Shown one piece after another: positions 36,795 through 59,406 of a DNA stretch of 64,000 nucleotides. The number at the start of each line of letters is the position of its first letter. Positions within the stretch are counted from its first letter, which is position 1. The notes beneath the pieces were generated by a model. The model did not search any database. It worked only from the letters and a program-made list of their open reading frames with translations, and had not been told where the DNA came from. The translations under genes were made by a program, and so were the position numbers. The stretch comes from Bugula neritina (Eukaryota; Animalia; Bryozoa). The DNA is taken from assembly GCA_964035545.1 (NCBI GenBank), contig OZ037767.1, positions 3,860,707 to 3,924,706 on the forward strand, given 5' to 3'.

Positions 36795-39700
36795 ATGGAT
36801 ACCAGCATTCCGCCATCAATTCCGCTCCCACCATCTCCTTTGCCATCCATGCCTCCAGGTTCTGTGAGTAGATGGATCAGGTGTGTTTGTTTGAAGTCAT
36901 CATTACCTGACCTGTAGCCAAGTGCAGATACTTTCAAATCACAGGATGTTTGGTTCAACTCCAGTACTACTTGGGTGTAGTGGCTGGCCTATAGTAGACA
37001 TTGGTCAGCTGAAACTATTAAAACTTGAATTCTTCTTTTTAGCAGGACTTTAATTTGCTAGTGTTTAGTTATTACAGTTGTTGAGCTGTTAGTTATTATT
37101 TCTTATAGTAGTTTACTAGTTTTGTTGTTGGTTGTTTAGTTGTTTGTTGGTTGTTCAGTTATTATAGTTGATAGTTATTAGTTACTAGTTGATAGTTATT
37201 AGTTACTAGTTGATAGCTACTAGTCACTAGTGGATAGTTGTTTAGTGATGACAACTACCTGCTATATCAGGTTTTGGAAAGCTTTAACTGTGGCACTGCA
37301 GAAAGAAGAATTGCGAATTACAATTTTTGACTTGCCAGGCTAGATATATTTTCCAACACATAAGTTATGTACTTCATCTACTAAATGCATTCACTGTAAG
37401 CGCAAAGTGTGTATTATTAGGAAAATGAACCGGGAGACTGTAGAAATATCTAAAGTCATACAGAAAAGTCCTGAAGATAGAACTAAGACCGAGTTAGATA
37501 GGATCCTGCCATACCTTGCCACCAGAAGTCAACTTCTCAATAAACTTAAAACAGGTTTGGAGAGTTTAGTGCTTTCAGTTGGTGGTGTAGTCAGTGGTAA
37601 GAATAAGGTAAATATGTTGGCCAGAATAAGGTAAATTATGTTGGTAAGGTTGAGCTGTCGAATTCACTAGAGATTTGTTTTACTTTATGTTCCTAATTTC
37701 TGTAGAATTTCAACTTATGTTTTGAGTTGGAGTTTTGAACAATCTCAACCTAAAGATTTTTGCTTAGCTCCATTTTCTAATTAAATGGTTAGATACTTGA
37801 TTGCTTTCTTCCACATTACATTACAAACATTCCAACTGATAATTTTAATTTACAGTCTGCAGGTGTTGTAGTCTAATTATGTGGTGTTGCAATGTGTGGA
37901 AAAAAACTGAAAATTTCTGCACCTTCAACTCTTGAATTTTCACGACAAAAAAAGCAGATTTCACCACATTATTTTATCAACAATTCCCTCTGCACTCCAG
38001 TGGCTACTGGCCTCACTATGCACAATATTTTACCTGCGCTATTTTGGTACTATATTTAGGTTTGTAATATTTTACTGGTTTCTTTGTAGAAGTTCTGTTT
38101 GAGCTTATTAAACACTGCCGCCATTTAAAGTGTAGAAGAAATGATGTGATTATAAGACAAGGAACAACTGGGGATTGGTAGGTATCGTAACTCCAGTATT
38201 ATATAGCCTTTTGGGAACTGAGTGTAATCCTAGTTTTTCTCCCATCATCCATATTCTGTATGGTCTACTTTGAAAGATCACAGGCTGAACTTTGCTATAC
38301 ATGTATTTATTCACTGGCCAAACCTTCTGTAGTATAAATTATTAGACAGCCATGATAGAACAGACAACGTTCAGCACTTCACCTAAAAGTACACGTTGAC
38401 TCAATATTATTTGGAGTTGTTTTTTTATACTATGCAATGCTTGCCCGGTGCTTTAAACAGCTGCAACTTTCTCAGTCAATGTTTGTGTAATAGTAAATCT
38501 ACTGATTAGAAATTGTCTTCTCATGTTGTAGCAATTTGTGTCAATTATTTGATTTACAATAACGAAATAATCTCTGTCAAAATTGTTTGCTTCAGCTGTT
38601 CAGTGTCATTTCCTTGCAATGTGGAATATTATTATATATAGAACTTGACATTTTAATTTCATTTAGTTTGTCACAATCTAGATAAAAATATGGGAGTGAA
38701 TGTAAAAAATAACAGTGCGGCCAGCTGATGGCTTGAATAGATTAAGTTCAAAGTTCAAATCAAATTTAGTTTGTAGTGTATACAGGGGGACAACTCCATA
38801 TTTTGAATTTCTCTGTAGTTTCTATATCATACTGACTGGGCAGACCTCTGTGTATATCGACTCTTCAAAGAATGACGATGTTTCGGATGAGGGAGGCGCG
38901 TCGGAGAAGAAAAACGACCTTGAATCGCTTTTCGAGGAACTGGACGAGCTGTTTGGAGGAAAGCAGAAAGCCAAAGAATCTCCGGAGAAAAAGAACGAGC
39001 AGGTTCAACGCTCCACACTTGGGAAGTTCATAATGATGATAGGTGCGTAACGCCACTCTATACTAAACTGGGAACTGTCCAGTCATACTATAGAAACTAG
39101 CTCTAGTTTTTATTTTATAGAGAATCGTTTATATTAACTTATCAGTGTTTCATACTAAAACATAGACAGGTGGAATCGGATTATCATGCTACAGGTAATT
39201 TGGGCACTCCTAATTTTAAGAGTTGTCTCTCCACACTACTACCATCCAAATTCTAAGCTCAGCATGTATAGTGTTGAACATTCTTAGATCTGTTTGAGGT
39301 GCTAAACTACTAAAAGTATTACAAGGCACACATTTCTAGATTGGAAAAAACTGTGTTCTACTGAACAATCCTAAAGAAAATTGGTTCTCACACAAGAATG
39401 GTTGCTGTTGGTACCTAATAAAGTATTGGTTGAAGAATGCAGATCTAAAACCTTCTGGTGCAATATTTTTAACAATCTAAGCAAAAAATTGTTTTAACTC
39501 TGCAAATTAAAAATAATTGAAGCTGATTCCAAAAAATTTAAAAAAGGTGCTTGTAGTTTTTTAATAAAAATTTTTGCCAGTCTAGGTATAACGAATTTTT
39601 TGCAGTAGTTTTTTTAAAACCAATTTATATTTACAAATGGATTATTTTTTATACTATGTAACACGCAGACAGACAATGCACTGTGTTTATGTTCAAGTAG

Positions 39701-42700
39701 AATGATTCAGTATAATATAAACTCAGTCATATTGGAAGGTGCAGCTATAAAATGTATTATATTTACGATACAAATTTATTATGCCTGATTGCATCTACTC
39801 CAATAGATTAATTAAATATCCCATAGAATAGTAATTATTATGAAGCTGGTGCATAGCAACAGCAACCATGTGTAGGATACGAGGGATTCCCTTGATACAC
39901 AATGTAAACAATAAAGTATTTGAATCTCCTATCCCTCCTGAACTATATTGAAAGACCACATATAATTCAGTGTAATTATATTGTCTGGCCACTACACTAT
40001 CATACTGTAGCTTTTCATGTTGTGCTTAAATAAACAGCCTTCTTATTGTAAAACATGAGTCTTTTGAACTTATAGATTTTGTGAAATACAATGACATCAG
40101 ATTTGTACAATCCTGTGGGCGAAGCTTAAATTTCAAGTGTTTGCCAATACTGGGGATTGGGTGTCAGCGCAGGTATAATATTTGATTCGTAGGTATAATA
40201 TTTAATTTGATATAACAGATACATACAAGGTGAATAATAAGCTCGGTTTGGCACTGAATGGATATATATATGGTTTTTATGGCTTGTACAGGTCTGGTAA
40301 GATTGTGTTAAGTTCTGACACATTTATTAATTATTATATACCTATATAAGTACTATATATGCTGGTTTCGTAGTTAATATTAAAACAGAGAATACAACTG
40401 CTGCATTAATGACTGTAAGTTTATGTAGTTAATGTAAGTGTGTATGGTTAAGGTAAGTGGGTATGGTTAAGGTAAGTTTTAATAGAAATATTGGCATACA
40501 AGCCTAGCAAAGTATAGTACATCATATACATGCAAGTCTGGAAGAACATGTAAGAATTAATAATAATAGTAAGAATAACACTAATAATAATATAATGATA
40601 CTATAATAATTTAATATAAAAAGACCAATAAAATATGAATTTGTATGTATGAGTTGTGAGATATTGCTTGGAAATAGCATTATTATTAAACAAGATTGTA
40701 ATGCAAAAGGTGGAATTATTTATTATAAAGACAAGGGGGTGGGGGTTAGATTGTGCTGCTGTCTTAATATTGTTTAAAAACAGCAGCAGGTAATCGGCAG
40801 GTAGCAGGTGACCGCTGGTATGGATAGATAAAAGTTTGTTCTATTGTTACAATATCCAATATATGTGATGGTTTTAGAATCTGGGGAAAGTTTCGGTGAA
40901 GTAGCGTTGCTCTCGGACAACGCTGAGAGAAATGCCTCGATAGTAGCTGACATGGACGGCATGGAGTTGCTGGTTGTGGACAGGGAACTCTACAGTAGAA
41001 CTGTCAAGGTTAGACAGTGAGATAGTAGTTTTAACTTGTTAATTACTTTACGAACTCATAAAAGTTTATAGTCACTATCCTTGTCAAAAACCCTGATGGA
41101 AAAGGTTTTTTAAATCAAGCTGAGGATTTATTTATATGGTGCAAAAGAGCAAATATGACTGAATGCTCTTCCTAACATCACAGGTGTTTGGACTTAACTG
41201 CTGACCTTGTGTTTATTAGGCCAGCAGTCTAAACACTACACCATGGCTTCCTCCTTACTCTATAGTCTAGACTTTAGAGTCTATATTTCTTACTATATAC
41301 TCTATAGATCACACTTCATAGTATATATTATTTAGTATATAAAATATACTCTATAATAACCTTCTTATAACACAGCTAATGTCAACCAACATAGTTTAGA
41401 TCAAAACCTCCAGAAACCAAAGTGTCATGCTAGACTTGTATGCTAGACTTGTAGGAGTGTTGGTAAGCTTCTATTTTGTTCAGAGCTGCTAAATGTCAAA
41501 CGTTTCATGTGTGATGAAATTACAGTCTGTTACTGGGGAATTTTAGAGCAAAGAATTTAATGCATGTAACTTTTCAGGGTTTAGTTAGTTTTATATGGAA
41601 TAGAATTAGCTTTTAAAACAGTACATACTCTTTACTCACTTTTTCTGTAGCTCTTGCCTAAATATAACTTCTAACTGTAAGTTCCAAATAATGGTGGCAG
41701 ATTCCAATAAATGGATTTCACGCATAATATAGTTTGTATAATGTTATGTATTGTTGTTTTGTATACTATCGTATATCGCGTATAATGTATTGCATGTTAT
41801 ATATTGATATATTATATATTACAAGATATTCTAAAATGATATTTTTTATGTCAATATCTTGAATATTACAATATATTTCAAACACCATTATATGATGTTA
41901 TATTATATATTAAAATTACATAACATAATTTATATTATATATAAATATAATGTATTATATAATGTATTATATAATATAATGTATTATATAATATAGTGTA
42001 TTATAATATATATTTCTCATATATACTAAACCAATGATCTGATGCTGCATCTAATCTCCACGCCAAAGTTCTATGAATAGTATTTCAGCTGTTTTTTCTG
42101 CTGATTCAGGAGAAGCAGCTAGCTGAGTACCAGTGTAAGCGGGCGTTCATCAGCACCCACCCTCTCTTCAAGCACTGGGGGTCTAGGATGCAGAGGCTAC
42201 TAGAGATGAGTATAACTAAGCAAAGTTACTCTTTCAACAACACTGTGGTGAAGCAAGGGCAACCCTATGATGGCCTCTACTTCCTAATATCGTGAGTCTT
42301 CATTTTTCACCTTTGTAGAATGCTAAAAGTCTTAATTAAACTTAAATTTATGGCTGTGAAACAGAAAACCTAGGCAAAAAACAAAATGTTTGATTTTCTT
42401 TTCACAGTGTAGTATCAGGCTGCAGTCATTTGTTTGTGTTTTGCTTTTTTTTGTTTCAAGCAATACAACAACCTAACTCAACTTTCACCTTACGTGTCCT
42501 ATAAAGGCAGTATGATTCTGTTAATAGTACAGCTACTCTTACAGAGTCGAGTTCATAACTTGGAATGGAATTGTTTCAGAGGTCAGGCGAAGGTCATGAT
42601 GGACACGAGTCGGCACCCTTCCCAGTACCCCCGTCTGATGAACCAGGTGAACTCAGCTAAGCACAGGACCCTGGCTCAGACTATGGTCCATGTTAAAAGG

Positions 42701-45700
42701 AACTTTGGCTATGTTGAGGCGGAGAAGCTGGCCAATCAAAAGCACATTGAAATGGCGCTGCTCACCGTTGGGGACGTGTTTGGTGGGTCAAGGTCATATT
42801 GAAAGTACTTTATTTGCGGTGAAAGTTGTTCACCATTTTGTGTATTAATAGATTTCGAACATTCAGAAAGAATTTATGAGCAGTGCTTTGAGGATTTTAT
42901 CTTTATGAGCATCTATCAAGTTGCTGGCCAAAGAATATTGTGGAAAAATGCAAGTTGACATAAATAGTGAAAGTCAATTGTAGTAACATACGTAGTTTGG
43001 GTATCTTATGTAAAAAGTATATAAACTTGTATTTGTATCAGCGATAGCAACCTCAGAATGCAATGAACTCTAACCTATAGCCTGTCTGCTGCCGTTAGGT
43101 TGATTGGAGTTCATTGTGTTACAGGAGGTCTGGAAGCTGCTGTACAGCTGCCGACATACATGGCCACCCTACAGTGTGTCACTGAGACTGTGGTGCTGCA
43201 CATCAACGCCAAAAACTACGACAGACTCGTTGTCAAGAAGAATCCAAAGACACACGAGCAGTTGAGGGAGACGACTTTCAATCATTATACAGATATTGTG
43301 AGTGTCAAGCTCTCTGTATATGATTGTATGTGTGTACGTGTGTTGATTGTTAAGCTTTTTGTGTGTGCGTGTGAGTGTACCTGCATGTGTGTGTGTGTGT
43401 GTGCATGTGAAAGAGAGAGAGATTTGTAAATAAGTATTATATGTGTGACAGAAGATATTGTATAATATTCATAACTTTAAACTATTCTCAATATTGGGAA
43501 CATAACTTCTTTTGAAATGTTATTTGCTAATAAAAATGTACAAAATAAAAATAGCTGTATGCGTAAACATATGTGGCATGTGTTCCTACTTTGTAGTTGA
43601 GACACAGGGCTACCCGTCCCCTACCGCTCATCCAGGCAGTATATAACAAACATATACACCTACAAGACAGTGAGCCTGTGGACCAGACTTGCAAAGTTAA
43701 GTTTAAAGATAAAACAGATAAGGAGCTGAGGACAGCCTACCTTCTCCAGGTATCTCAGTCTAACTTGTTCGGTTTCTGTCGATTTGTAACTCTCATACTG
43801 GTTACTGTGATTTCTGGAGTTTGTATATTTCTCTATTGGTGGTATTATATTACAGAAATTCTTATATAGGATAAATAATATATTAGTATCACTCTAGATG
43901 TAAATTTTTTTAACCATTTTGCTCATACAAACCTTAATTCATTTTTCAAATATTGTGTTTATAAATATTGATATGAAAATCTTATTTTTTCATAAATTAA
44001 TATAATATGTTTATATGATTAACGTATGTTTATATGATCAACATATGTTTATATGAATTAATATATATTTAGATATGGTTTCTATTGCAGCATGTTGTCC
44101 TATATGTTAGCTTTGTTTCTATTAGCTGTATGCAGAAGGAAAGATGCAGCTATTCGAGCCTTGGGTCCCGGACTCGGTCTACTTCCGTCATAAGAGTATC
44201 GAGAGGAGGAAACAGTCTCTGTCGGCTAGAGACAGAATTCTTAAGGAACAGCGGGACAACTCCGTAAATGGCAAACTTCGGTCTCTGCATGAGATGCGTA
44301 AAAGTATGCTAGACGTTTTAATATAGATGGAGTATATAGATTATAAATAGAACATATAATATAGAAAGAGTGGAATATATAGTATAAGTAGAACATAGAA
44401 TATTACAGAAATATGATATAGTAATATAATATATATAGGACGTAGAGTAATAATTAACCATAGTATATAGAAAGAATAGAGTATATAGAGAATATAAAAT
44501 TTATCAAAAATATTCTCATAATTTACATGCAATTAGTTGCAAATATTCCCGGTTTATGTTATGGGCTAAAATGTGGTGCAGAATATTTTACTAAAGAATT
44601 TGTACTGCAGTAATACAGTATTAATTTTTTCTGTTGTAAAAGTTACTAATGCCATAGCAGCACAAACCTTGTATTAGCTTAAATGTGTTCCTTTGGGAGT
44701 TGTTTTCTCAACGTATTTTCGATTGCAGTAATTTGTTTTGTAGTCTTATAGTAGTCTGAAACTCGTTATTTCTAGTCTATTCTTTCTTCGGCAGAGGTTC
44801 TATCAGGAAATGGACGAAGGGCTCGAAGTCGAAGAGAGTTGGCCAATGTGACGCTGGACGAGTTCATAGCTACACAGAAAGTGATGAGCAAGTACACGGA
44901 GTACCGGAGCAAGGAGGACACTGCGGCCGACAAGAGAGAGGAGTTACCTCATCATGCTAATCCCGTCTCCGTGTCTCCCTCCACTATTAAGACTTCCCAC
45001 AATCCTAGCAGACGGTCGTCTGCTAAGCCTTATGTGCAGATCAATGACTCACCTTTACTCCATGAAGAGAAATCTGGGAATACTGCGACTACAGCCGTAG
45101 ACCAAAATCTTATATTAAACTCGGACACTCTGCCCGACAACCCGCCAAATACTCAGCAGCCAAACTATGACATGGGAGCTAAGGTTAGTGAGAGTTTACT
45201 CTATGTGTAAATGTATAGTTAAAAGGTGTTGACAGAGTAAAGCAAGCAAGAGAAATTATTTTCTATGATATAGAATGTTTGTGAAAAATGCAAGCTTATA
45301 TGCTTTATATGCTTAATTTATTATTATTATTATTAAAAATTATTTCTGGGATGTGGATGGTTTTTTAAAAGATTGCAAGTTTACTTTGACTTTATATGAC
45401 TGGTAAAAAGAAGCAAGTCAATTTCTAGCAGTTATTGGTATTAGTTTAACAAGCTCTGACTATGCTTAACTTATTATTCTTTCATCTTAAGAGTTGGGAA
45501 TTTTTTCATAGTTACAAGTTTTCTTCAGCAGTTTAGACCTTTACCTGAGGCTGGTTTCCAGTTTTAAACATTATAAGAGGGTAAAGGAATTAGTTGATTA
45601 GTATATTATTTTCATGAACATTTTTGCAGGAAATTTGAAAAAACAAGTGAAATCTTAAGTGAAACTTAAGTAAACTTAAACATCATTTAAATGCCTGTTT

Positions 45701-48566
45701 AAACAAACCTATATTATTTTCATTATTATTTTACGCTTATTAATTACTTTACATTATACATTCACCTATGGTATTTTTCTAAGAACTTATTAATCTATAA
45801 TTCATCATCTTGTGTTTAACAGCACATGACTGAGTTTGCTGTTGAATAAGTAATGAGGCTCATTATTTATTGATATGTAAATTCTTGCTAGCAACCAAAC
45901 AAATATTCACCCAATCTGCCCTAATCATTTATACCACATGTCAATATAGTGTTTCAAGCTCCAAGAAATGAAAATTGCTCTTTTTGAATATATCTTGTAA
46001 AATTGAATATGTAGTTTTGAGACTATATATGTGTAATGGAAAGTGTTAATTCGTTATTATGGTTTAGTTTATGAGACGCACAGAGCATGCATAAAGCATA
46101 TATTATTACACATTGCAGCCATTCTAGCAATAGCTTGTCAAAAGCTGATGTTTATTTATAGTAACCTTGGTGTATGGTTTTCAGTGATTCCTCAGGACAG
46201 TTGATTTTTTTTATTGATGTCCTTGTTACTGCTGGTCACATGTAGCTACTCAAGTTTTACTTGTTTTAGTTTCCTGTCCGACCCATGACTGCCGTCCAAT
46301 CAGCACCCACAGAACACACCAATCAGTCCCTCTTGTTGGATGAAGATATTCTACGGAATGCTCTGGGAGACAACTCCTTGGTGGCATTTTTTAATGGTGA
46401 GAATTTCTTCTGATGAAAGAATTAATGTAAATAGAGCTTAGAATATAAATGCAACATGGTATTTTTATAAGTTTAAACACTAGTGTTGGGGTAAATGTAA
46501 ATTGTAATTGGTTGTAATTAATTATATTGCCATGTACATGTAGTTGTAATTGTAATTAATTACATTACTTTTTAACTGTAATTAATTACATTCACATATA
46601 ATTGACCCCAATCCTGGACTAAACACTGGTGTTGGGCAGAATCCCACGCTTGTACTTGTTTATAACGCACTCTTTTCTCAGAAACTGTAATGTCAATACC
46701 TTCAATAATAAAATATTATATTGTTTGTTTTAAGTCTTAATTCCTATGAGAATCCTAAAGGTGAAGGTCTTCTGAGCAGTGTCTCCCACTGCTCATGTAC
46801 TATGGTGAGAGTGTTTTGACAATATTTCTTTTCACAGTTATGGAAGCGATGAGTCGTAGAAGGCAGATGAAGAAGTACAAAAGTCGCCCAGTTTCAGCTC
46901 CTAATATTACTACCAACGATGATAGCATAGATTCTGATGAAGATATCAGAGGGGGAGATAACTTTGAATATGTTGACAAGGAGTCTAGTCATGAGGTGCC
47001 CTTAGATGTATAGTTATTTATTTGATGATTCGTGTATGTCTGTAGGTCTACACTGATTATTTTAGATGTTATGCCACTGTTTTCTCTCATTAAATTACTA
47101 ACTAGAAATTGTTTTACAATCAGAGGCTATCTGAGTGTCCTATAAATTTAAATTTCAGAAGAATAATTTTAAATGAATAAACTGAATTTATATATTCTAA
47201 ATAAAATGCTTTATTTTCCCCACTCTCTTAGCATCTGTTTATTCTTATATTCACTTGTAGTAAGATTCATAGTTATTTGTTTAATATTTTTATCACCAAC
47301 TCCCATGTATGACTGCAGATGTTATTTATCACCAACTCCCCTGTATGACTGTAGGTACTGTATATCACCAATTCCCCTGTATGACTGTAGGTGCTGTTGT
47401 CCTTAGAACAGAGAGTCTCCAATTTCCATAAGAAAATGTTGCAGAATAAATCAGATGACAAAGTTAGAGTAGCAGATATGAAAAGATGTAATATTCAGGT
47501 AAACAATATGTCCTACAAACAACCATTACCTATAAACGTAGTGTAGAATAAATACTAGACATGTGCTATGTCTGTGCACATGTTTGTGTTGTGCGTTTGC
47601 TCTTAGCATTTCAGTATCCTAAGTATGAATGTAAGTATTTTACTCTCTCTCTCTCTCTCTCTGGTCACTTCAACAAACCTAGGAGTTCCTAATTTAATTG
47701 TTTACCACTTTCTAAAATATCTGAAATCTAATACTAAGAATAAAATAGAATAAATACTTGTGTGGATATAAACTGACAGATACTGTCCATCAGGCATTAG
47801 CATTCATTTCCTGAATGGTTTTCGAGCTCACTTAACAGCATGAAATCCACGAAATACTCTTCAGTGACCTTTACACTGTTCAAGGTCATGCGAGGCTCTT
47901 TAGAATAATTTAGTTGCCAATAGACACATTATTCAAACATTTGTATGAAATGCGATTCATATCAGTTGTTGTGTGTGATGGTTACCATCTTGTATCTCTT
48001 ACAAAGTATTGAATTTCTCACCAGAGGTATGTCATTTCCTGTTAAAACTTGTTGAAACTGTTTACACTTTCTCTACTAAGCAGTAGGCGGTATATCTTCG
48101 ATGTTGCTCGTATTCTTCAATTATCACATTGTGAGTCACATCTAATAACCATTACTGAGTAGTAAATGCAAAGAGTGTGTCTATTTTGCATTGCTTATGC
48201 AAAATAGACACATTGTACATTACTGAGTTGTCAATGCATTTGCATTGCTAATGCATTGGGTACTTTAAAGTCTGAAAGATTATGCCAGTCCATACATACA
48301 TTGTACTCAAGTAAGTGCCTCATCAACTTCTGCATCTCATCCCGTGTCATTGACACACTTTTCTCATTTTATTACAGTATTCTCTTCTCTGAAATCTATT
48401 CTTGGTACTTTAGAGACTGAGTCCACCCGTGGCAGGGGGAACTGTGTTTGTAAGACTGAGGCCCTGCTCTTCTAAGCCTTCTGACGGGGACGATCTCTCT
48501 GACCACCACAACCATGTTAGAAGATATATCCTTCCTAAACTAAACACTTTTCAACCTAATCAATAG
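36795..48566 (+). CDS. Protein with two cyclic-nucleotide-binding domains (CNBD2-like invertebrate family); start at 36795 or 37425 uncertain
   Basis: Exons 36795-36863 (uncertain), ~37401-37554 (KSPEDRT), 38090-38177 (IIRQGTTGD), 38819-39042 (CFYIILTG), 40878-41008 (GESFGEVALLSDNAERNASIVA, phosphate-binding cassette), 42110-42291 (HPLFKHW..VKQG..GLYFLI), 42580-42782, 43125-43297, 43597-43749, 44126-44303, 44795-45183, 46270-46396, 46838-46995, 47391-47498 and 48414-48566 (stop). Phases are consistent. Confidence 0.85.
46481..46616. mobile_element. hAT-like MITE with internal gtaatt/aattac repeats
   Basis: Left end tagtgttggggtaaatg, right end attgaccccaatcctg (imperfect TIRs); internal tgtaatt and aattaca motifs in inverted orientation. 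Confidence 0.55.
47291..47398 (+). repeat. 3 x 36-bp tandem repeat spanning a splice acceptor of the CNBD gene
   Basis: tatcaccaa(c/t)tccc(a/c)tgtatgactg(c/t)ag plus 8 nt, at 47291, 47327 and 47363. Confidence 0.92.
48176..48212. repeat. 16-bp perfect inverted repeat with a 5-nt loop (intronic)
   Basis: tgtgtctattttgcat-tgctt-atgcaaaatagacaca. Confidence 0.85.
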
Positions 48567-49937: not shown

Positions 49938-52900
49938 ATGGCGTCCACAACCTCATCTGACAAGTATCTTGTCCAGTTTCATGAGTTTACAGAAGACAGT
50001 GACCTGCACGGGATTAAACAGCTGACTCGGGTTCAAAATGGTTGGGTGAGTTTGCGTGGTGTTATATTCTGCTTTGACCTCTACTTCTTTATCATGAGCC
50101 AAATGCTATTTTCCTATTTATATTTTAATAATATTTAGGCAGGTCTCTTTTCATTACTTCTTAAAACTGTTTTTCCAAGTTCAGTTTCTGGGTCCAGTAG
50201 GGTGTTGAGGTAGCAGTTTTAACTAAAATAGAACTGATGTTAGGTAAATCTTCAACACTGCTCCTAAGCTACACTTAGGGGCTTCTAAGCTAAGTTGGGA
50301 ATAAAAGCTTATAGTCTTAAAAAGCTTCAGTTCTTACAGTGGTTGAGGGTTTTCAAAGAGGTAGTTGATACAAGGGATCAAGGATAAGAGAAGATTTTGA
50401 GTTGACTGAGGCTTTGCCTGCTTAAACGTATATTATTTACATTATGTTTTTATTCTAGATTGATATTATCTTATTTTACCTGCTGTAGGTATAGCAATAA
50501 ATCAGCTCCACATTGCTCAACATTGTTAGTGACTTGAGTTAACTTATTCAACAAGAATGCTGCGTCCATTTACAAAGTAGAACTGTATTCTTCCAGTAAA
50601 TAATTATTCAATTTTATAGCAAGTTTATTGATATAAGGTGATTACTTGCTATATGCAAATTAATCCAATTAACTTGGAGTTTAACCTGTTACAAGTTGAA
50701 GCAGTTTTACTGATTTTAATTATCCTTTTACATCTACAATTGTTCATAGGTTGAATTTTGAAAGCTATGGATACTGTAACTGTTAATAGTTTCACACATT
50801 TCACTCTGCTTACTTGCAGGGTACTTTGATCTCAAAGTGTAGTCAAATGCAGTATGAAAAAAGTTTAGAAAAAAAGCCATATGTTTCAGCTGACAAATTT
50901 TGCAACTGCTGTGTTATTTAGCTATTTTTAACCTGCTCCTTCAACTAAAATTTATAGACGAATAAAGGAACATGAACTTGAATTAGAAATCTCTACTGAA
51001 TTATTGTGCCCAAATGTCAAAGTTAAGAAATGTAGAAACTGACAAATATTTTTTAATTTTTCAACAATCTAGAAATGCTGCTCTAGTGTAGTATCCTATA
51101 GCTTTTACATAAGTTTTGCATGAATTCTTACACCCTGCCATTGTAAAAACCTTAAACAATTGCCTAGATATTATGAAAATGTAATATAGCAACATTCTTC
51201 AAATGTTGACATTTCTGACATCCATAACCAAAGTTCACAAGTGAATATTTTTGCTAATTGCTAAGAATTTCTGCATTTAGTGAGTGACCTGAGAATAAAA
51301 GTTTGACTTTTAAAATCTAGTTATTCTTCCGTAGAGTTCTATAACATGTGGCAAATTTAATCATTCTCTAAACACTTATAATTATTTAAATACTTGGTGA
51401 AGCACTTAGAAATCGATGTGCTGCCAAGGTATTATAACTATGATGCATATTGCGTCTTTTATTATGTGTGTTATGCACATATAACGTTGCTATTATTCAA
51501 TACTATATGCATGTAAATAAGTTTGAAAAGCAATAGTCTGAAAGCATAAAACTATACAAGACTTGATGTCTACTGTCTTACTTTTAAATGTTGAAATAAT
51601 TTATTTCTCTTCAGAGACCAGGTTGGACTTGACAAGAATTATTTGCCAGAGGTTTTTGCAGAATTCTGTTAGTCCATGACTTGATACGTTTGATGAGTCT
51701 AAAGTTGCAAACTGTGGCATATTTCAATTAGATAACTTCATCTTATAAGAGTGATTGACAGGGTTATTCATGAATCTAGATGAACATTTGCTAATAGGGA
51801 TACTCAACAGTTTACAAGTTGTGTGCTCAATCCTCCTTATTATTAAACTGAGAAATTTTAAAACCTGCAGCTAAATTTGCGCTAAGCAAAATGCGATAGT
51901 ATAGCGTTCATTTCTTATATGTTTATAGTTTAGTTCTGAAGAGCTATTTTATATACATATCCATATATCACAAAAAATATATCCTGGTGTATAAAAGTTT
52001 CTTCCCTGAAGAAATTAAATGATTATCTTAACAAGAAATTATGTGTTAGTTTCAACTAAAGATCAGTAACGAAGCATATTTTGTTAAATTCGACTCACTA
52101 CTTAATCTGTTTAACTGCACAGGTTAGCAAAACATCATGAAATATTTTATAAATAAATCTAATGCAATTAAGAAAATTGCTTTTGCTCTATAGAAAGTGA
52201 ATTTGCCTTTCTTTTTCCAGGTCACCATATTTAACATTAAATTTTAATTAAAATTCAAAAGCTTTTTAAAATAATATTGTCACATAATTTAGTGAGTTGT
52301 TGAACAGTTGGTGAGGTCATTTATTTCTCATTTTCTAATGCATTTCTTTCAAACACATGCTTTTCAACATTTGCGTTTCAAGGGCGGTAAATAGATTTAG
52401 AACTTAACTTTTCATTAGTTTAAAAGTAGTTTCTGTGTTTGGTTAAGTCAAAGAACTTTTATAATAATGAGAAACCAATTAATTGGCTGCATAAAAGCCT
52501 CGTTTAGCTCTAGTAAGCCATAAGGATTCTCTATATCCTATAATAACATATTTTAATCAAGAAAAGTTTCTTCTTTAACTAACCATCTATTTTTAAGCTT
52601 GTTAAAATAAATAATAAATCAAATTCTATACAAATTATATTATCTAATAGTTTCTATAGCTATTGACACCTTAAAATCTTAGTGCATCATTCACGTACAT
52701 CTAGCATTTAAACTCTAAATGTTTGTGATTATGTTTATGATTTTTTATGTTTGTATCTTTTAATTGACCACACAGGTTTGGCATTAAGGAATTTTGAGTG
52801 GTATGCTTAATGAAACACAATCTCTGCTGTTTGCTGAATGCCTGAATAAAATCTTATTAATTGGTTTTACTAACATTATTATTAAAATAAACTGTCAGTT

Positions 52901-55900
52901 TAAATAACTTAACCCGTTACAAATTCTGGTATACTTGAAATGTGGTTTTTCTGGTATGTTCTATTCATGATATGCTATTGTGTTACTAGACTCTAGAATA
53001 GTCTTTTTTTCTACAATATTAGCAGCATTTACACCATTCTGAGTCACAAGTGGGTAAAGATAGTTGAAGAAGAACATTGTTTGTACTATAGAAATCAAAA
53101 AGCATTGTTGGCAAATATAAGCTTTGATTGCAAACTCTAATAACTCTAATAAGTGTATCATATCATCTTAGTCTTTATAATAAATATAGTATACTTTGAA
53201 ACACAACAACCTTTTCCATTTTCTACTGCTTGTAAACTAATGCAGTGCTTGTATCTATTTGACTAAACTTTTCTAAATCTTGACAGGGATAGTTCAGTGA
53301 GAGCTATAGCCATTTTGTGATGCAATCCATCTTTAAATACTTTTCTACCATTATTCAACATCTAATTTCTTTTGCATAGAATTTCTCTCATAATTTTATT
53401 CAAACATTTACTGGCACACTAAAATTTGGACATATAAAAATACATTCTTTGAAATGTTAAATATATAAAATTATATTATTTATTTTAGCTTATGGCGTAG
53501 TTTATAAGCACATAATATATCAGGCTGCATGCTTCTGTTACAGTTTAGAAGAGTGGTTTGGGGTGCAATGGTGTTCAGTTCTCTTGGAGTTCTCATCTAT
53601 ACAACAATCAACCAAATCGTATATTTCTTTAATTATGAACATTCTACCAAATATGACATCAATTTCGTGCACCAGCTAGGTAGGTAAAGCTGTAAAGCTG
53701 TAAAATATCGTAATATTTTTATTCTATTTATTACTTTTGTATATAAACATGTGTAATTTTCCTTGAACTTTTTAGTCAATAAAAGTTAGAGTATTTTTAT
53801 GTTTATGGATATATATGCTACTTTGACATTTCCATCATGTAGTTGCCAATTGTACTGTCTAGCTTTGGTAAAAAAAGATTAACTAGGCGAGGTAAAACTA
53901 TACATTTCATTTATCAAATAATTTTGTAAAAACAAAATTCTAGTTTCATGAATTCTTATTTTTTTGAAAATAATATTTTAATTTGCGAAATAAAAATTTT
54001 ATTTTATGACAATAAACAAATTTTTCAGTTGAAAGGAACAAAAGTAATTCTCACTGTAGATTTTCCAGCCATTACAATATGCAATGCTAACAAGCATAGA
54101 CGAAGTTCCTTAACCTTTAAGGATATAGTAATTATGGGACCTCATCTTGGCCTCACCGACTATAATATGACCTTACAACACCCTGAGCTCTATCCTCCTG
54201 ACTGGTACAATGAGACTTTTCTCCAGACGAACTGGACAGAGATCAAGCCGCTGTACAATGGTTGGTAACTTGTGTCTTTGTGTATGTGAGTGTCGCTATG
54301 GAGTTATCTTCTCAATCACAGTACTTCTTCCGTATCTCACTAAGCTGCAGCTTCTAAAACTTTGGTTTGTAGCGTAGTAGAATACCATTTTTAACTCCCG
54401 GATCTATAAAATTCGGCCATTTTATTCCCATACACACATAAAAAACTACAAAACAGGATCCAAGTCCTTCTCTTGACCTATTGAATTTCGTGAGAAATAG
54501 AACTCTGAGATATAGATGAAGTTCCTAAGCTTGCAACATTATGCAGTGTGGGTCTGTAGCAATTATGTCTATAGCATTTCTAGCCCGTGGCAGAGGATAA
54601 CTGCTGTAAAACACCAATTTTGAATAGACATCTGGTTTTATAGAGGATGATTTTGACATGACCGAGTTCTTCAATAGAACTGGCCACCAGTACAAGGACC
54701 TGGTACAGCACTGCAGCTGGAAGGGACACAAATGTGACAGGAGCTCGTGGAGTGTGGACTACACTCACTACGGCAAGTGCTACACCTTCAACAAGAACGG
54801 GGACCACCTCCTTATAAAGGCTGGAGCAGGTGCGTTCAACTTCAACTTCCTAAATACCTATCTCATGGTATGATAGAATTATAATATAGAAGAAATGGCC
54901 ACAAACCTTCAAATATTTTTTGTTTTATTCAACAAAAATGAAGCAGTGCTGTTACTTATAACTATTGCATATTTCAAACTTTCTAATTTCTGTTTACTTG
55001 CTTATAGGTTATTGTAATCCCTAACAAGTTATATTGTCACCTGATTAATTTTATAATATGCAGTACATATATATATATTTATAATAATTAAAACTCTGCT
55101 TAAATGTATAATAATAATGCCATTCAAAGGAGTAAATAAAATTATAGTGATCTATACATATGCTAGCACGTAAGACATGCGGACAAATAGATGAATATAC
55201 ACAGTATTATATTGTATCTTCAAGGTAATGGGCTGCATCTTGTGCTGTTTGACGAGGAACACGAATATCTAGAAACACTGGAATCTGATGACCTTGGGGT
55301 CAAGTTCTTGCCACACGCTTACATTGAACCTCCTTTTCTAAAAGAGCTAGGGTTTGGCTTAGCGCCAGGTTTTCACTACTTGATTGCATTGAAGGAGAAA
55401 TCTGTAAGTTTGTATTATAATGAAGTTTGATATATTTCAAGGCTGTAAATACCAGCTGCGTTTACAAAAATCTTGTTGTGTATAAATTTTGCAAAGCTAC
55501 TTTAAATAGAGCTATAATTAATGCTAATAGTTTTTATTTGAATGACCCTATAATTTGACCTATAAGAAAACAGACATAATTGTATTAGTGCTCAAACAAA
55601 AATACTGTAGTATTTCAACTGTTGTTTTTATTGCATTACTTTGAAGAGTTCATAGGTCAAAGGCCACAAGTCATATACAAAACATTTGGAATAATACTTT
55701 AAGGATCTTTTGAGTTTAGCTAGACACTGCAAAGTTTGAACTCAAATTTTACTTCTAATTTAATTTTAGTCTAATTTTTACATTTACAATATTTTACCCT
55801 CAATCAATTTTAAAAACAATCTAATTGTCACTTGCATATGGTTAAACTTAGCAGAGTTTAGTAGCATTCTACATAGGTTGAGTATGTCTAACATAGTATT

Positions 55901-58808
55901 AAGCTGAGTGCAACTGCCACCAGGTCATTGCCTTGCCTCTTCCTTACGGAGACTGTGAAACTGACCATCCCACAAAATTCTTTCCCAACTACACCGTTCC
56001 TGGATGTCGGATTGAATGTGAGACTGAAAAGATTTACGATCAATGTGGCTGCCGATTGGTGGAGAGCCCGGGGTATTACCCCATATGCACTCCAACTCAG
56101 TTTGATTGTGCGACAGCAATGCTAGGTAGCTGGCACCACGATTTTTTGTCCTTTAGTTATGGGTGAGCAGAATTATACAGGAAGTGGTAAATTTATTGCA
56201 GCTCATTTAAATTTGTGTTTTCAATATTTTATCTAATTGTGAGTTACGCTAAAATTTTATTATCTAAATTAATTTAGGTGAGCTGCTGCCGTTAAGTGTT
56301 TAATAACAGACAGACAGATGTATAAATCTGCTCACGTGTAACTAGCTTGTTTCATTTCACTGACTTTGGAGCTTTAATAGTTGTTGAATATACTGTAGAT
56401 GATAATGCTACCACATCCACACGGTAACTGTATACTAGATCATAAGACCCGCTACTTCAACAACTATACCGTGTCGGCCTGTAGGATTGAATGTGAAACT
56501 GAAAAAATATTTGCAAACTGTAACTGTCGGTTGGTAGAAAGTCCCGGTGACCACCCGACTTGTATACCAAGTCAGTTCCAGTGTGCCTTGCAAGTGTTAG
56601 GTACATCAATGTAGCTCTTTATTTTGGTTTAGTCCAGCTGTGCTTGCAGAAAGTCTTCGCTTGACACTTTCTACGTGTTGTGAACACGATGAGCATGCAT
56701 GCAGCCCGTCAGCTATATTGTAACATAATGCTTTTAAATGTTGCGTTGGTATATAAAATTGCATATTATAGTCATGGGATATATATATATATATATATAT
56801 ATATGCGCCTACCAGTCTTATGCAAGTCTAATTTATATTTGTGCTTGTCTGCTGCTATAAACTCATTTTAAATCTTACGTACTATCATTTGAATTTTGCA
56901 CTTTCATTATACCTGCTCTGTGGATTATATTTTAACCTATTATTTTATAAGGTTATGTGTTCATAAAAATACTTGGTAAACTTCATACATGAAACAATTG
57001 TTTTAACCTACACTGACTTTTGGTTTTAGCTAAGTATGTTTTTATGAAAGGAGGTTTATTGAGACATAGCTAGGGGCCAATGATACATTTATTTAAAAAT
57101 TTTCTACATCTTTATATAAAATAATAAAATAAAGTTTAATTAAATTAAAAATATAACCCTACAAGTAGTATATTTATTGTACTAAATGTATATATTTACA
57201 GAACAGATTGAGAAATCTGATGAGTGTGTTTGTGAGAACCCCTGTAACGCCACCCAATACCCATATACAATGTCAAAACTTAGGCTAAGAGAGTCAACAG
57301 TAGATAAACTAAAGAAAGAGCACCCAATCCCACCAGAGTTAAACAGGTACTGCAATATCTGGACTGCAATATCTGGTGGTATTGAATGACTTAACAATAC
57401 AAGACTGAAAATTTTCAGGCAAAGAAAAATAATTCTTGAACATTGAAGGTTTTGCTTCTAGGCTTTGTTTCACTGCATTTGTCAACAGTTTATTAAATTT
57501 GTGTTCACATAAGATTATTTATTCACCTGGTGGTGATAAAACAAGCTTTCGTGATTCAAATGATAAATATGAGAGGTAGGTGCAGTAATGGAGAAATTGA
57601 GAATAAGCCTGTGTTCTAGATTAGAAATGTAGCAAAATAAGTTATGTTCTCTCAAGAATTTCAACCTGCCCCCGAAACAAAATTTATTAACAATATTGAA
57701 AAGCTTACGCTATTAAAATTTTTCCTTTACTTCACCTAAATTGTTATTAAGGTGTATGAGCTGAAGTCTATTAGTATAATATTATTTTTAATATTTTACT
57801 GTAATTAGGTTTTTCGAAACTAAAGACAACTTCTTTACACAGCTGTAGCAACAAACCACTCATCTGTCAACAAAATTAAAACTTTATTGAGTTTGTGATG
57901 CATTTTTTAAAACTACGTTGTTTGTTCTAGAGACAACATTATTGTGCTCAACCTCTACTTTGATACTTTGTCGTATGAATACATCAAGCAGGTTCCAGCA
58001 TACAGCTTCTCATCTATACTGAGTATGTACCTCTACAGTTTGTTTAATAGTTATTGATGTGTACGTGAGAAATAGATCGATGTGTTATTTTAGGGCCGTC
58101 TGACGTTTGTGTAAAATAATCTTTTTATTTGAGTTCAATTTGTCTGAAGTAATATTATACTATTTAATATTGTAGTTCATGTTTGGTCTTCAGTTTTATA
58201 ATAGTATAGTGATACAAGCTGTATTTCCTGTGCCTGTTTAGTGGATAGAACTTCATTAATATTAATTAGTTACACCTACTAACTCCATACTATAGTTGAA
58301 CAAAATAGCTTACTATATTTAAAATTTTAACAAATCAGCCATCTTTCATTGAGGGCTTAAGCCAGGTACAAGTAGCTTTATAAGTTGATACGTCATTTTT
58401 TCAAAGTTCTTCATTGTAGCACAACAGAAATAAGTAATTAGCTTTTGTTTTTATTTTCTGAGATTTGTTAGAATATTGCAAGTAACATGGCAAATGTGAG
58501 AGATTGAAATCCAGTACTAGAAAATCAGCAAAGCAGTCACAGTAGAGTATGCAGTTATGAAAATTGAAACTGATTTAAACATGACCGTGGTGTTCATTTA
58601 TTGCATCAAATTATTATCTTGTTTTATTCTGTCAGGTGATTTTGGTGGAAATATGGGACTGTGGCTCGGAGCTAGCGCTTTGGCAGCGTTCCAGCTGATT
58701 GATTACCTGGCAGTGGCTTGTTATATGAGGTGCTGCCAGTGTGCTAGAAAGGTCAAACCGACAGACAACAAGGTCATGGCTTGGGAAACTGAGAAAGAGA
58801 AATATTAA
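49938..58808 (+). CDS. ASIC-like DEG/ENaC sodium channel subunit with alternative exons 6a/6b
   Basis: Exons 49938-50045 (..DLHGIKQL, pre-TM1 HG motif), 53544-53679 (RRVVW..TM1..YEHSTKYD), 54060-54260 (FPAITICN), 54644-54829 (YGKCYTFN..AGA), 55225-55403 (GNGL..EPPFLKELGFGLAPGF), 55924-56125 or 56399-56600 (CRIECET..CxCRLV), 57202-57346 (CVCENPCN), 57931-58022 (LNLYFDTLSYE..QVPAY) and 58637-58808 (SDFGGNMGLWLGAS, TM2). Confidence 0.95.
55924..56125 (+). CDS. Alternative thumb-domain exon 6a (202 nt, phase 0 to 1)
   Basis: caccag|VIALPLPYGDCETDHPTKFFPNYTVPGCRIECETEKIYDQCGCRLVESPGYYPICTPTQFDCATAML|gtagct. Confidence 0.9.
56154..56344 (+). promoter_or_regulatory. Predicted intronic pre-mRNA stem-loop between exons 6a and 6b (putative splicing-control structure)
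   Basis: 56154-56179 pairs with 56319-56344 (24/26 pairs, 2 G-U); nested 56198-56213 pairs with 56271-56286 (16/16 pairs, 2 G-U). Confidence 0.7.
56399..56600 (+). CDS. Alternative thumb-domain exon 6b (202 nt, phase 0 to 1)
   Basis: ctgtag|MIMLPHPHGNCILDHKTRYFNNYTVSACRIECETEKIFANCNCRLVESPGDHPTCIPSQFQCALQVL|gtacat. Confidence 0.9.
57573..57650 (+). mobile_element. Copy of the GAGGTAGGTGCAGTAATGGAGA TIR-like interspersed repeat
   Basis: Matches 17692-17765 over ~75 bp. Confidence 0.7.
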
Positions 58809-59406
58809 CACTTCTTTCAGTTTCTAGTAGATGATCCAGATTGTGCATCCCAAAATGATTATTTTTGTATTTTCCTAATGTAACTTACAATTTAAAGTGA
58901 TATTTATTAGCTTTGTTATTTTCACATTTAATTATTTCAAACTTTTGGTGTGAAGAATCCAATGATGCAATGTAAAAAGCAAAATGGTGTGGAAACCAAC
59001 CTCTGAGTTACATAATTTATTCCCAATGCAATTACCTTAGACTTTAAAAATATGAGTAAATCTCTACACTTGTGATGTAATATAACTGTTAAACCAGTAT
59101 ACCATTTAAATGCAAATTGTGTTAGGCATTTTGTGTTGCAACCCTGTAATATTTTTTACACATTCACTATATTTATTTTTACTGTGGTATTAAATTTTGC
59201 GGATTCAATTTGAAAATTTTGAGTGTTTATATTATGTTTATAAAAAAGCTATATGTAACCATTTATACATGATGTGGAGCGTCAAATTGCGGCAGAAAAT
59301 AAACAAAGCTGATTGGTTACTTTAACTTACTTGTTTTATGTACTGTTTAATGTAACATCAACTGCAAGTGCAATTTTGCTTCAACAGCCCACAGTTCTCA
59401 CTTTAT

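Follow-up and report, generated by a model that had tools for sequence, protein, structure and literature searches.

A probable pair of mutually exclusive thumb exons in an ASIC-like DEG/ENaC channel gene of the bryozoan Bugula neritina

The DNA analysed here, hereafter called the window, is a stretch of 64,000 nucleotides from the bryozoan Bugula neritina (assembly GCA_964035545.1, contig OZ037767.1, positions 3,860,707 to 3,924,706 of the forward strand). It occupies C3:3860707-3924706 in the 216-Mb genome and is AT-rich, with a GC content of about 34%. A channel gene of the DEG/ENaC family lies on the plus strand between about 49.9 and 58.8 kb of the window. This gene displays nine exon positions, the sixth of which is held by two adjacent and homologous exons, designated 6a and 6b, and the exon lengths total 1437 nt, or 478 codons and a stop, with either of the two. 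Both copies encode most of the thumb domain familiar from ASIC channels and probably constitute a mutually exclusive pair.

The family assignment is based on the Pfam ASC profile (PF00858), which is matched by seven of eight exon pieces in colinear order over profile positions 40 to 455, five of these pieces being singly above the cut-off of 23.6 bits. DEG/ENaC hallmarks can also be read in the translated exons, namely 'DLHG' in exon 1, a hydrophobic first transmembrane segment (TM1) in exon 2 and 'GLWLGAS' in exon 9. The transmembrane segments and the G-A-S filter were read from the sequence without topology prediction, and all the searches as well as the fold were performed exon by exon rather than on the joined protein. 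The RNA data consist of the contigs of four sequencing runs from four studies (X1, X2, X3 and X9), aligned to positions 53900-58850 of the window; their RNA nature is that given by the run labels. The splice joints found in these public contigs fix exons 3 (to 54260), 4, 5, 7, 8 and 9, and every intron joint listed is of the GT..AG type. The features of the gene are as follows, in window coordinates.

49938..50040, plus strand: exon 1, start codon and N-terminus with an F..T..D..HG motif; borders inferred from an open frame with ATG.
53524..53679, plus strand: exon 2, TM1 and post-TM1 'YEHSTKYD'; borders inferred from AG/GT sites and frame.
54060..54260, plus strand: exon 3, start of the palm and finger, 'DFPAITICN'; Pfam ASC 40-89; joint 54260->54644.
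54644..54829, plus strand: exon 4, Pfam ASC 133-188; joints 54260->54644 and 54829->55225, both GT..AG.
55225..55403, plus strand: exon 5, ending in phase 0; Pfam ASC 201-264; joints 54829->55225 and 55403->56399.
55924..56125, plus strand: exon 6a, first thumb exon copy, 202 nt, phase 0 to 1; joint 56125->57202 in X1.
56126..56398, plus strand: intron between 6a and 6b, 273 nt, single copy in the genome; long imperfect hairpin at 56154-56344.
56399..56600, plus strand: exon 6b, second thumb exon copy, 202 nt, phase 0 to 1; joints 55403->56399 and 56600->57202.
57202..57346, plus strand: exon 7, Pfam ASC 352-384; common acceptor for 6a and 6b; joint 57346->57931.
57931..58022, plus strand: exon 8, beta11-12, 'LNLYFDTLSYEYIKQ'; joints 57346->57931 and 58022->58636 in all four runs.
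58636..58808, plus strand: exon 9, second transmembrane segment (TM2) with the G-A-S filter, and C-terminus; Pfam ASC 430-455; TAA stop at 58806-58808.

The definition of the first exons deserves some comment. Exon 1 displays neither RNA support in the contigs nor a Pfam match; its donor, G|GTTGGG, was chosen as the sole option in frame with exon 2. Exon 2 matches the exon-2 open frame of a chromosome-1 paralogue at E 1e-17 with 54% identity (tblastn). RNA-type contigs span 54057-54247 of exon 3, the acceptor of which was reset to the AG at 54058-54059. The joint between exons 4 and 5 (54829->55225) was found in all four runs. Exon 7 contributes the rest of the thumb, with 'CVCENPC' holding the last three thumb cysteines in a CxCxxxC arrangement, and then returns to the palm.

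Exons 6a and 6b are each preceded by AG, followed by GT and stop-free from the first base, and comprise 67 codons plus one base. The encoded peptides are 61% identical, with 41 of 67 columns invariant, and the DNA identity amounts to 62%. The two copies share all seven cysteines, the CRIECETEKI run, CRLVESPG and the NYT motif for N-glycosylation, and each has retained both splice sites. When 6b was searched in six frames against the entire genome, it retrieved 6a at E 2e-24, and the likeness of the two is therefore not due to chance. A third copy of the thumb exon, intact or degenerate, is not present within the window. The pair displays the features by which clusters of mutually exclusive exons are recognized: the copies are adjacent, separated by a 273-nt intron, homologous, of equal length (202 and 202 nt) and phase, and each is provided with its own splice sites.

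Since each exon measures 3n+1 nt, mRNAs containing both or neither are frameshifted to early stops. When 6b is read after 6a, the translation proceeds for nine codons (DDNATTSTR) and then stops, and exon 7 read straight after exon 5 runs into a stop after 28 codons. The exclusivity of the two exons in productive mRNAs is thus set by the reading frame. The two peptides also differ in composition: 6a contains 9 acidic and 4 basic residues and 1 His (net charge -5), 6b contains 6 acidic and 5 basic residues and 4 His (net charge -1). The first-pass annotation of this DNA, made from the sequence alone, had described two open paralogous 202-nt exons of phase 0 to 1 with AG/GT sites, the conservation of the seven cysteines, CRIECETEKI and CRLVESPG, the stops reached when both exons are included or both skipped, and a more acidic 6a facing a more histidine-rich 6b. 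Direct reading and script agreed on the first of these points, the peptide alignment and the frame computation bore out the second and third, and the residue counts given above correspond to the last.

The use of the exons can be followed in the RNA-type contigs, where the many spliced joints show that mRNA is present in the runs. The joint 55403->56399, which connects exon 5 to 6b and skips 6a, occurs in X1 and X9, from two studies, and a single X9 contig runs through exons 5, 6b and 7. The joint 56600->57202 from 6b to exon 7 occurs in X1, X2, X3 and X9, hence in four of the four runs and studies. The alternative joint 56125->57202, from 6a to exon 7 with 6b skipped, was found in X1 only; it uses exactly the predicted borders and the same acceptor as the junction between 6b and exon 7. 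In X1, contigs bounded by the ends of 6a display a depth of 21-34, as compared to 32 for 6b and about 6 for a contig of unspliced intron, and in the three other runs the depth of 6a is zero. Joints from 6a to 6b and from exon 5 to exon 7 are not listed in any of the four runs, a result obtained on contigs that cannot show the double form to be absent.

The segment encoded by 6a and 6b is the thumb, as the first-pass annotation had stated for this Cys-rich segment. Both exons match Pfam ASC positions 273-336 and, over their whole length, ASIC1 and ASIC2 chains at E 1e-13 to 2e-15, at about residues 282-346 of chicken ASIC1 (cASIC1). Both also match PDB entry 7lie (78 residues), whose title designates the isolated chicken ASIC1a thumb domain. 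From an alignment of 32 thumb segments, 6a was modelled with AlphaFold at a mean pLDDT of 85.7, and the model gave TM scores of 0.71-0.78 against ASIC1 structures; its two predicted helices, at residues 25-41 and 57-66, correspond to alpha4 and the start of alpha5. As far as the thumb only is concerned, the resemblance is highest to ASIC1/2 (E 1e-13 to 1e-15), as opposed to 1e-5 for ASIC5 and 0.1 or weaker for PPK/ENaC.

None of the 26 residues, out of 67, that differ between the copies is a cysteine or belongs to the alpha4 core. The substitutions are located in the strand and loop that precede alpha4, in the last turn and the ends of this helix, in the alpha4-alpha5 loop and in the initial turns of alpha5. 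Both isoforms have the same disulfide scaffold, with seven cysteines in the thumb exon and three in exon 7. The residue before the Cys344 equivalent is Asp in 6a and Gln in 6b, at a position where chicken ASIC1 has a Glu of the acidic pocket. Residues tied to proton activation are H73, D78, E411 and E416 of rat ASIC1a, together with E342/D345 of the acidic pocket. By eye, a His and an Asp can be recognized in 'YEHSTKYD' of exon 2, and a D and an E in 'YFDTLSYE' of exon 8. The acidic pocket has been described as conserved only in the chordate group A ASICs (PMC9949801).

The substitution comparison of the two copies, one of the checks proposed at the outset, indicates an old duplication followed by a long retention. 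Differences between 6a and 6b at codon positions 1, 2 and 3 number 21, 17 and 39. By the Nei-Gojobori method, the proportion of synonymous differences (pS) is 0.89 and thus saturated, that of non-synonymous differences (pN) is 0.25, the frames are open and the cysteines are kept. No similarity remains between the introns flanking 6a and 6b, which together with the saturated pS implies that the duplication is old. Saturation of pS while pN stays at 0.25 further implies that both copies have long been kept by selection, a pattern indicative of purifying selection on each of them. Because the frame, the splice sites, the cysteines and the helix core are maintained in both, neither appears to be a silent copy. 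In a small tree of thumb segments, 6a stands on a short branch and 6b on a long one, and the identity to the exon of the nearest relative (contig L014) is 72% for 6a and 60% for 6b. The latter is therefore the derived copy, although it is the more common of the two in RNA.

Where the RNA contigs differ from the genome, the variants were synonymous in six of six cases in exons 5 and 7 and non-synonymous in three of five in 6a and four of five in 6b. On these small numbers, constraint on the variable thumb positions would seem to be weaker, or diversifying, in each of the copies. Two of the 6b variants, A27G and T54I, change to the residue found in 6a. Taken together, and again on small numbers, the variants of the two exons hint that selection is relaxed or diversifying, or that one copy has been converted by the other.

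The genome contains about 20 other DEG/ENaC thumb loci with a single thumb exon within 3 kb on either side. A second tandem pair of thumb exons was nevertheless found at C3:17201162-17201845 (L006:1492-1693 and 1971-2175), in a distant DEG/ENaC paralogue that spans about C3:17192000-17203300 (L011, L006) and has an exon for a Sushi repeat in the ectodomain. These exons measure 202 and 205 nt, lie 277 nt apart, are both of phase 0 to 1 and are bordered by AG/GT sites. Their DNA identity is about 62%, with pS 0.88 and pN 0.26, and reading the second copy after the first leads to a stop after 12 codons. To judge by these sequence features, the second pair is probably mutually exclusive as well, and the thumb exon unit is duplicated in two separate genes.

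Two tandem close paralogues of the window gene, about 12 kb apart, were also observed at C1:1424000-1446000 (L012, L004, L013). Each has a single thumb exon, and the two thumbs are 76% identical with a pS of 0.49. This pair is a younger whole-gene duplication, unlike the exon duplication in the window, which by the same measure appears to be the older of the two events.

Contigs from relatives (L015, L016, L035, L036) display exon 5, one thumb exon and exon 7 and belong to paralogue-like genes; this layout is common to the single-thumb relatives found in the genome and in the relatives' contigs. A profile search over 1.8 billion representatives and word-indexed searches returned only short exon-level fragments from relatives. 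For the thumb, the closest named relatives, and likewise the best full-length library matches, come from amphioxus and Ptychodera ('ASIC-like' proteins) and from Owenia fusiformis; the annotated isoforms of these relatives display no difference in the thumb. Both a bryozoan and the annelid Owenia fusiformis are reported to possess ASICs (PMC9949801). A side observation concerns a Branchiostoma ASIC2-like protein, isoform X4 of which (P0154) differs from X1 (P0153) and X3 (P0006) by scattered substitutions in beta11-12, TM2 and the C-terminus, the thumb being unaffected; the pattern is suggestive of either a homologous set of alternative 3' exons or read-through into a copy in tandem. Alternative thumb exons in ASIC or DEG/ENaC genes were not described in any report found in the searchable literature library, to which this statement is restricted.

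Several elements that might govern the choice between 6a and 6b were considered. The donors of 6a and 6b, GTAGCT and GTACAT, are weaker than the GTAAGT of exon 5, and the pyrimidine tracts of both exons are poor, the acceptor of 6a being purine-rich with a weak polypyrimidine tract. Steric hindrance was rejected as a mechanism of exclusivity in view of the 273-nt length of the intron separating the exons. Competing RNA structures were rejected as unsupported, as the inverted repeats among the three introns are AT-rich and weak, with duplex energies no better than those of dinucleotide shuffles. The hairpin at 56154-56344, made of nested inverted repeats of 26 and 16 nt (I2, I10), fills most of the 6a-6b intron and is not a repeat element. 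It folds with a z-score of -2.3, a value equalled by 5 of 200 shuffles, and the intron of the second pair has no counterpart of it (z -0.34); being only modestly better than shuffled sequence, it is mentioned here in passing, and any role in splicing would be hypothetical. A perfect 12-nt complement was also observed between 56377-56388, just upstream of the 6b acceptor, and 56456-56467, inside 6b and 67 nt away. This complementarity may mask the 6b acceptor, or may have arisen by chance in AT-rich sequence.

Other features of the window can be mentioned briefly. Upstream of the channel gene, positions 37300-47000 of the plus strand hold an apparently multi-exon gene with cyclic-nucleotide-binding-like motifs, for instance in the open frame 40832-41017, as judged from the raw list of open frames alone. 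Intron 7 contains, at 57572-57666, an interspersed repeat of roughly 105 nt with more than 2000 candidates in a first look at the genome, at about 90-93% identity. Its depth is enormous in every one of the RNA-type runs. It matches neither Rfam nor tRNA and is probably an element resembling a short interspersed nuclear element (SINE) or a miniature inverted-repeat transposable element (MITE). In the same intron, positions 57418-57532 match the Rfam family snoZ5, a C/D-box small nucleolar RNA; the score of 26 bits (E 0.04) falls short of the gathering score of 60, and this match is probably a chance one.

Exons 6a and 6b are best explained, with a high degree of confidence, as a genuine pair of mutually exclusive homologous exons, derived from an ancient tandem duplication of the thumb exon in an ASIC-like DEG/ENaC gene. 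Exon 5 would be spliced to either 6a or 6b and either exon then to exon 7, which would yield two subunit isoforms identical except for 26 of the 67 thumb residues. The mRNAs containing both exons or neither, being frameshifted, would be removed by nonsense-mediated decay (NMD), a fate listed for the frameshifted forms of other exon pairs (PMC7797038). Because 6a was found in only one of the four RNA sets, the choice is presumably regulated by tissue or stage. Gating or ligand sensitivity would most likely not be the same in the two isoforms, since motion of the thumb couples the ligand or proton site to the gate in ASICs. In these channels, the alpha4 and alpha5 helices of the thumb move as the acidic pocket collapses and relay the movement to the pore, and five thumb residues are enough for rat and human ASIC1a to differ in pH dependence and in their response to toxin (PMC9612379). 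By analogy, a difference between 6a and 6b in pH, metal or ligand sensitivity is plausible.

A number of observations weigh against this explanation. The use of 6a is documented by one run, X1, which is a metagenomic RNA-Seq library and which, as it holds a contig of the unspliced 6a-6b intron, includes some DNA or pre-mRNA. The joint from 6a to exon 7 has 26 nt on its short side, below the caution level of 30 nt. The contigs provide neither the ratio of the isoforms nor proof that the 6a-6b form is absent. The initial inference that one gene encodes two channels with different thumbs was supported, and one-or-the-other splicing was borne out largely though not fully: the joints from 5 to 6b, from 6b to 7 and from 6a to 7 were seen and none from 6a to 6b is listed, but the joint from exon 5 to 6a is absent from those listed in the four runs and 6a is confined to one of them. 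The only contig of the closest relative (L014) displays one thumb exon beside exon 7 with too little sequence upstream, so that conservation of the pair is not shown by it. The equivalent of cASIC1 D346 is T in 6a and L in 6b; neither is acidic, and proton gating through the acidic pocket is therefore not assured.

The most substantial alternative is that 6b is in effect constitutive and 6a a rarely used or obsolescent duplicate, the inclusion of which reflects splicing noise with no distinct channel function. The presence of 6b in all four RNA-type runs, the zero depth of 6a in three of them, the unlisted joint to 6a from exon 5 and the weak, purine-rich tract of its acceptor would all fit such a situation. 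After a saturated divergence, however, 6a still has an open frame, AG/GT sites, all seven cysteines and a pN of 0.25, and with its short branch and its 72% identity to the relative's exon, as against 60% for 6b, it is the slower-evolving and more ancestral-looking copy. In X1, moreover, its depth (21-34) is near that of 6b (32) and far exceeds that of the intron (6), and its joint with exon 7 uses precisely the predicted site. We regard obsolescence of 6a as unlikely. It is still less probable that the pair serves regulated unproductive splicing, in which inclusion of both exons or of neither would switch the gene off through a premature stop instead of giving two proteins. The 3n+1 length is compatible with it and the stops of both forms lie well upstream of later exon junctions, but no joint from 6a to 6b or from 5 to 7 is listed in any run, and a poison-exon role would need neither conserved cysteines, nor a conserved helix core, nor a low pN in both copies. 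That the tandem copy could stem from an artefact of assembly or haplotypes, or from a piece of a pseudogene nearby, is already contradicted and can hardly be entertained: the copies are just 62% identical in DNA, a DNA-type run contains 98% of the sampled words of the stretch, an independent contig (X1 record 4) crosses the 6a-6b intron into 6b, and both copies lie between exons 5 and 7 of one gene in matching phases.

Beyond the mutually exclusive pair itself, a broader proposal can be put forward, tentatively. Given that two distant paralogues have duplicated a 3n+1 thumb exon, swapping of the thumb by exon choice may be a recurrent and selected way of diversifying DEG/ENaC sensors in this lineage, the derived 6b being the common form and 6a the form of a particular tissue, stage or symbiont-bearing sample. 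If this proves true, one locus would encode two channels with measurably different gating by ligand, pH or metal, and would amount to a natural thumb-chimera experiment. In ASICs, the thumb acts as a lever between the ligand or proton pocket and the gate, several peptide toxins dock on it, and its role has so far been studied by means of man-made chimeras and point mutants. A natural swap restricted to the thumb would constitute a pair of channels made by evolution, with 26 known differences on a fixed scaffold, that can easily be expressed and compared. Taken with the pair of the distant paralogue, the present one suggests that diversification makes preferential use of the thumb exon as a unit.

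Tandem-duplicated mutually exclusive exons are a well-documented general kind (PMC7797038, PMC12772994). The mechanism leading from tandem exon duplication to mutual exclusion is thus well known and the advance made here is incremental. Like exons 5a/5b of the SCN alpha genes and the flip/flop exons of GluR, exons 6a and 6b are adjacent, old, equal in length and phase and under purifying selection, and swap a sensor module of a channel. Unlike those pairs, they belong to another family and affect another domain, and their 3n+1 length allows the frame alone to forbid both inclusion and skipping of the two. In this respect they resemble FGFR2 IIIb/IIIc, in which the exclusivity of the productive mRNAs results from frameshift and premature stops, with the difference that for 6a and 6b the contribution of NMD is one that we infer. 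Within the DEG/ENaC family, mutually exclusive exons 5 and 6 have been shown experimentally in the degenerin-like del-6 of C. elegans (PMC4165533). One of the del-6 exons measures 3n+1 nt and has its own termination codon and the other measures 3n nt, so that a truncated and a full product are obtained; in contrast, 6a and 6b would give two equivalent versions of the thumb.

The closest comparison is found in the same family. In vertebrate ASIC1 and ASIC2, the homologous exons that exclude each other lie at the 5' end (PMC4494069), in agreement with the remark of the first-pass annotation that the a and b isoforms of vertebrate ASICs vary at the N-terminus. As in ASIC1a/ASIC1b and ASIC2a/ASIC2b, one gene would give two subunits by means of homologous alternative exons, and in the vertebrate channels this choice alters gating and pharmacology. 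In vertebrates, the variable exon lies at the 5' end, encodes the N-terminus, TM1 and the first part of the ectodomain and relies on alternative starts, whereas 6a and 6b are internal 202-nt exons that encode most of the thumb and are bordered by common exons on both sides. The Bugula gene would thereby extend the isoform repertoire of the ASICs from alternative 5' exons to an internal sensor module.

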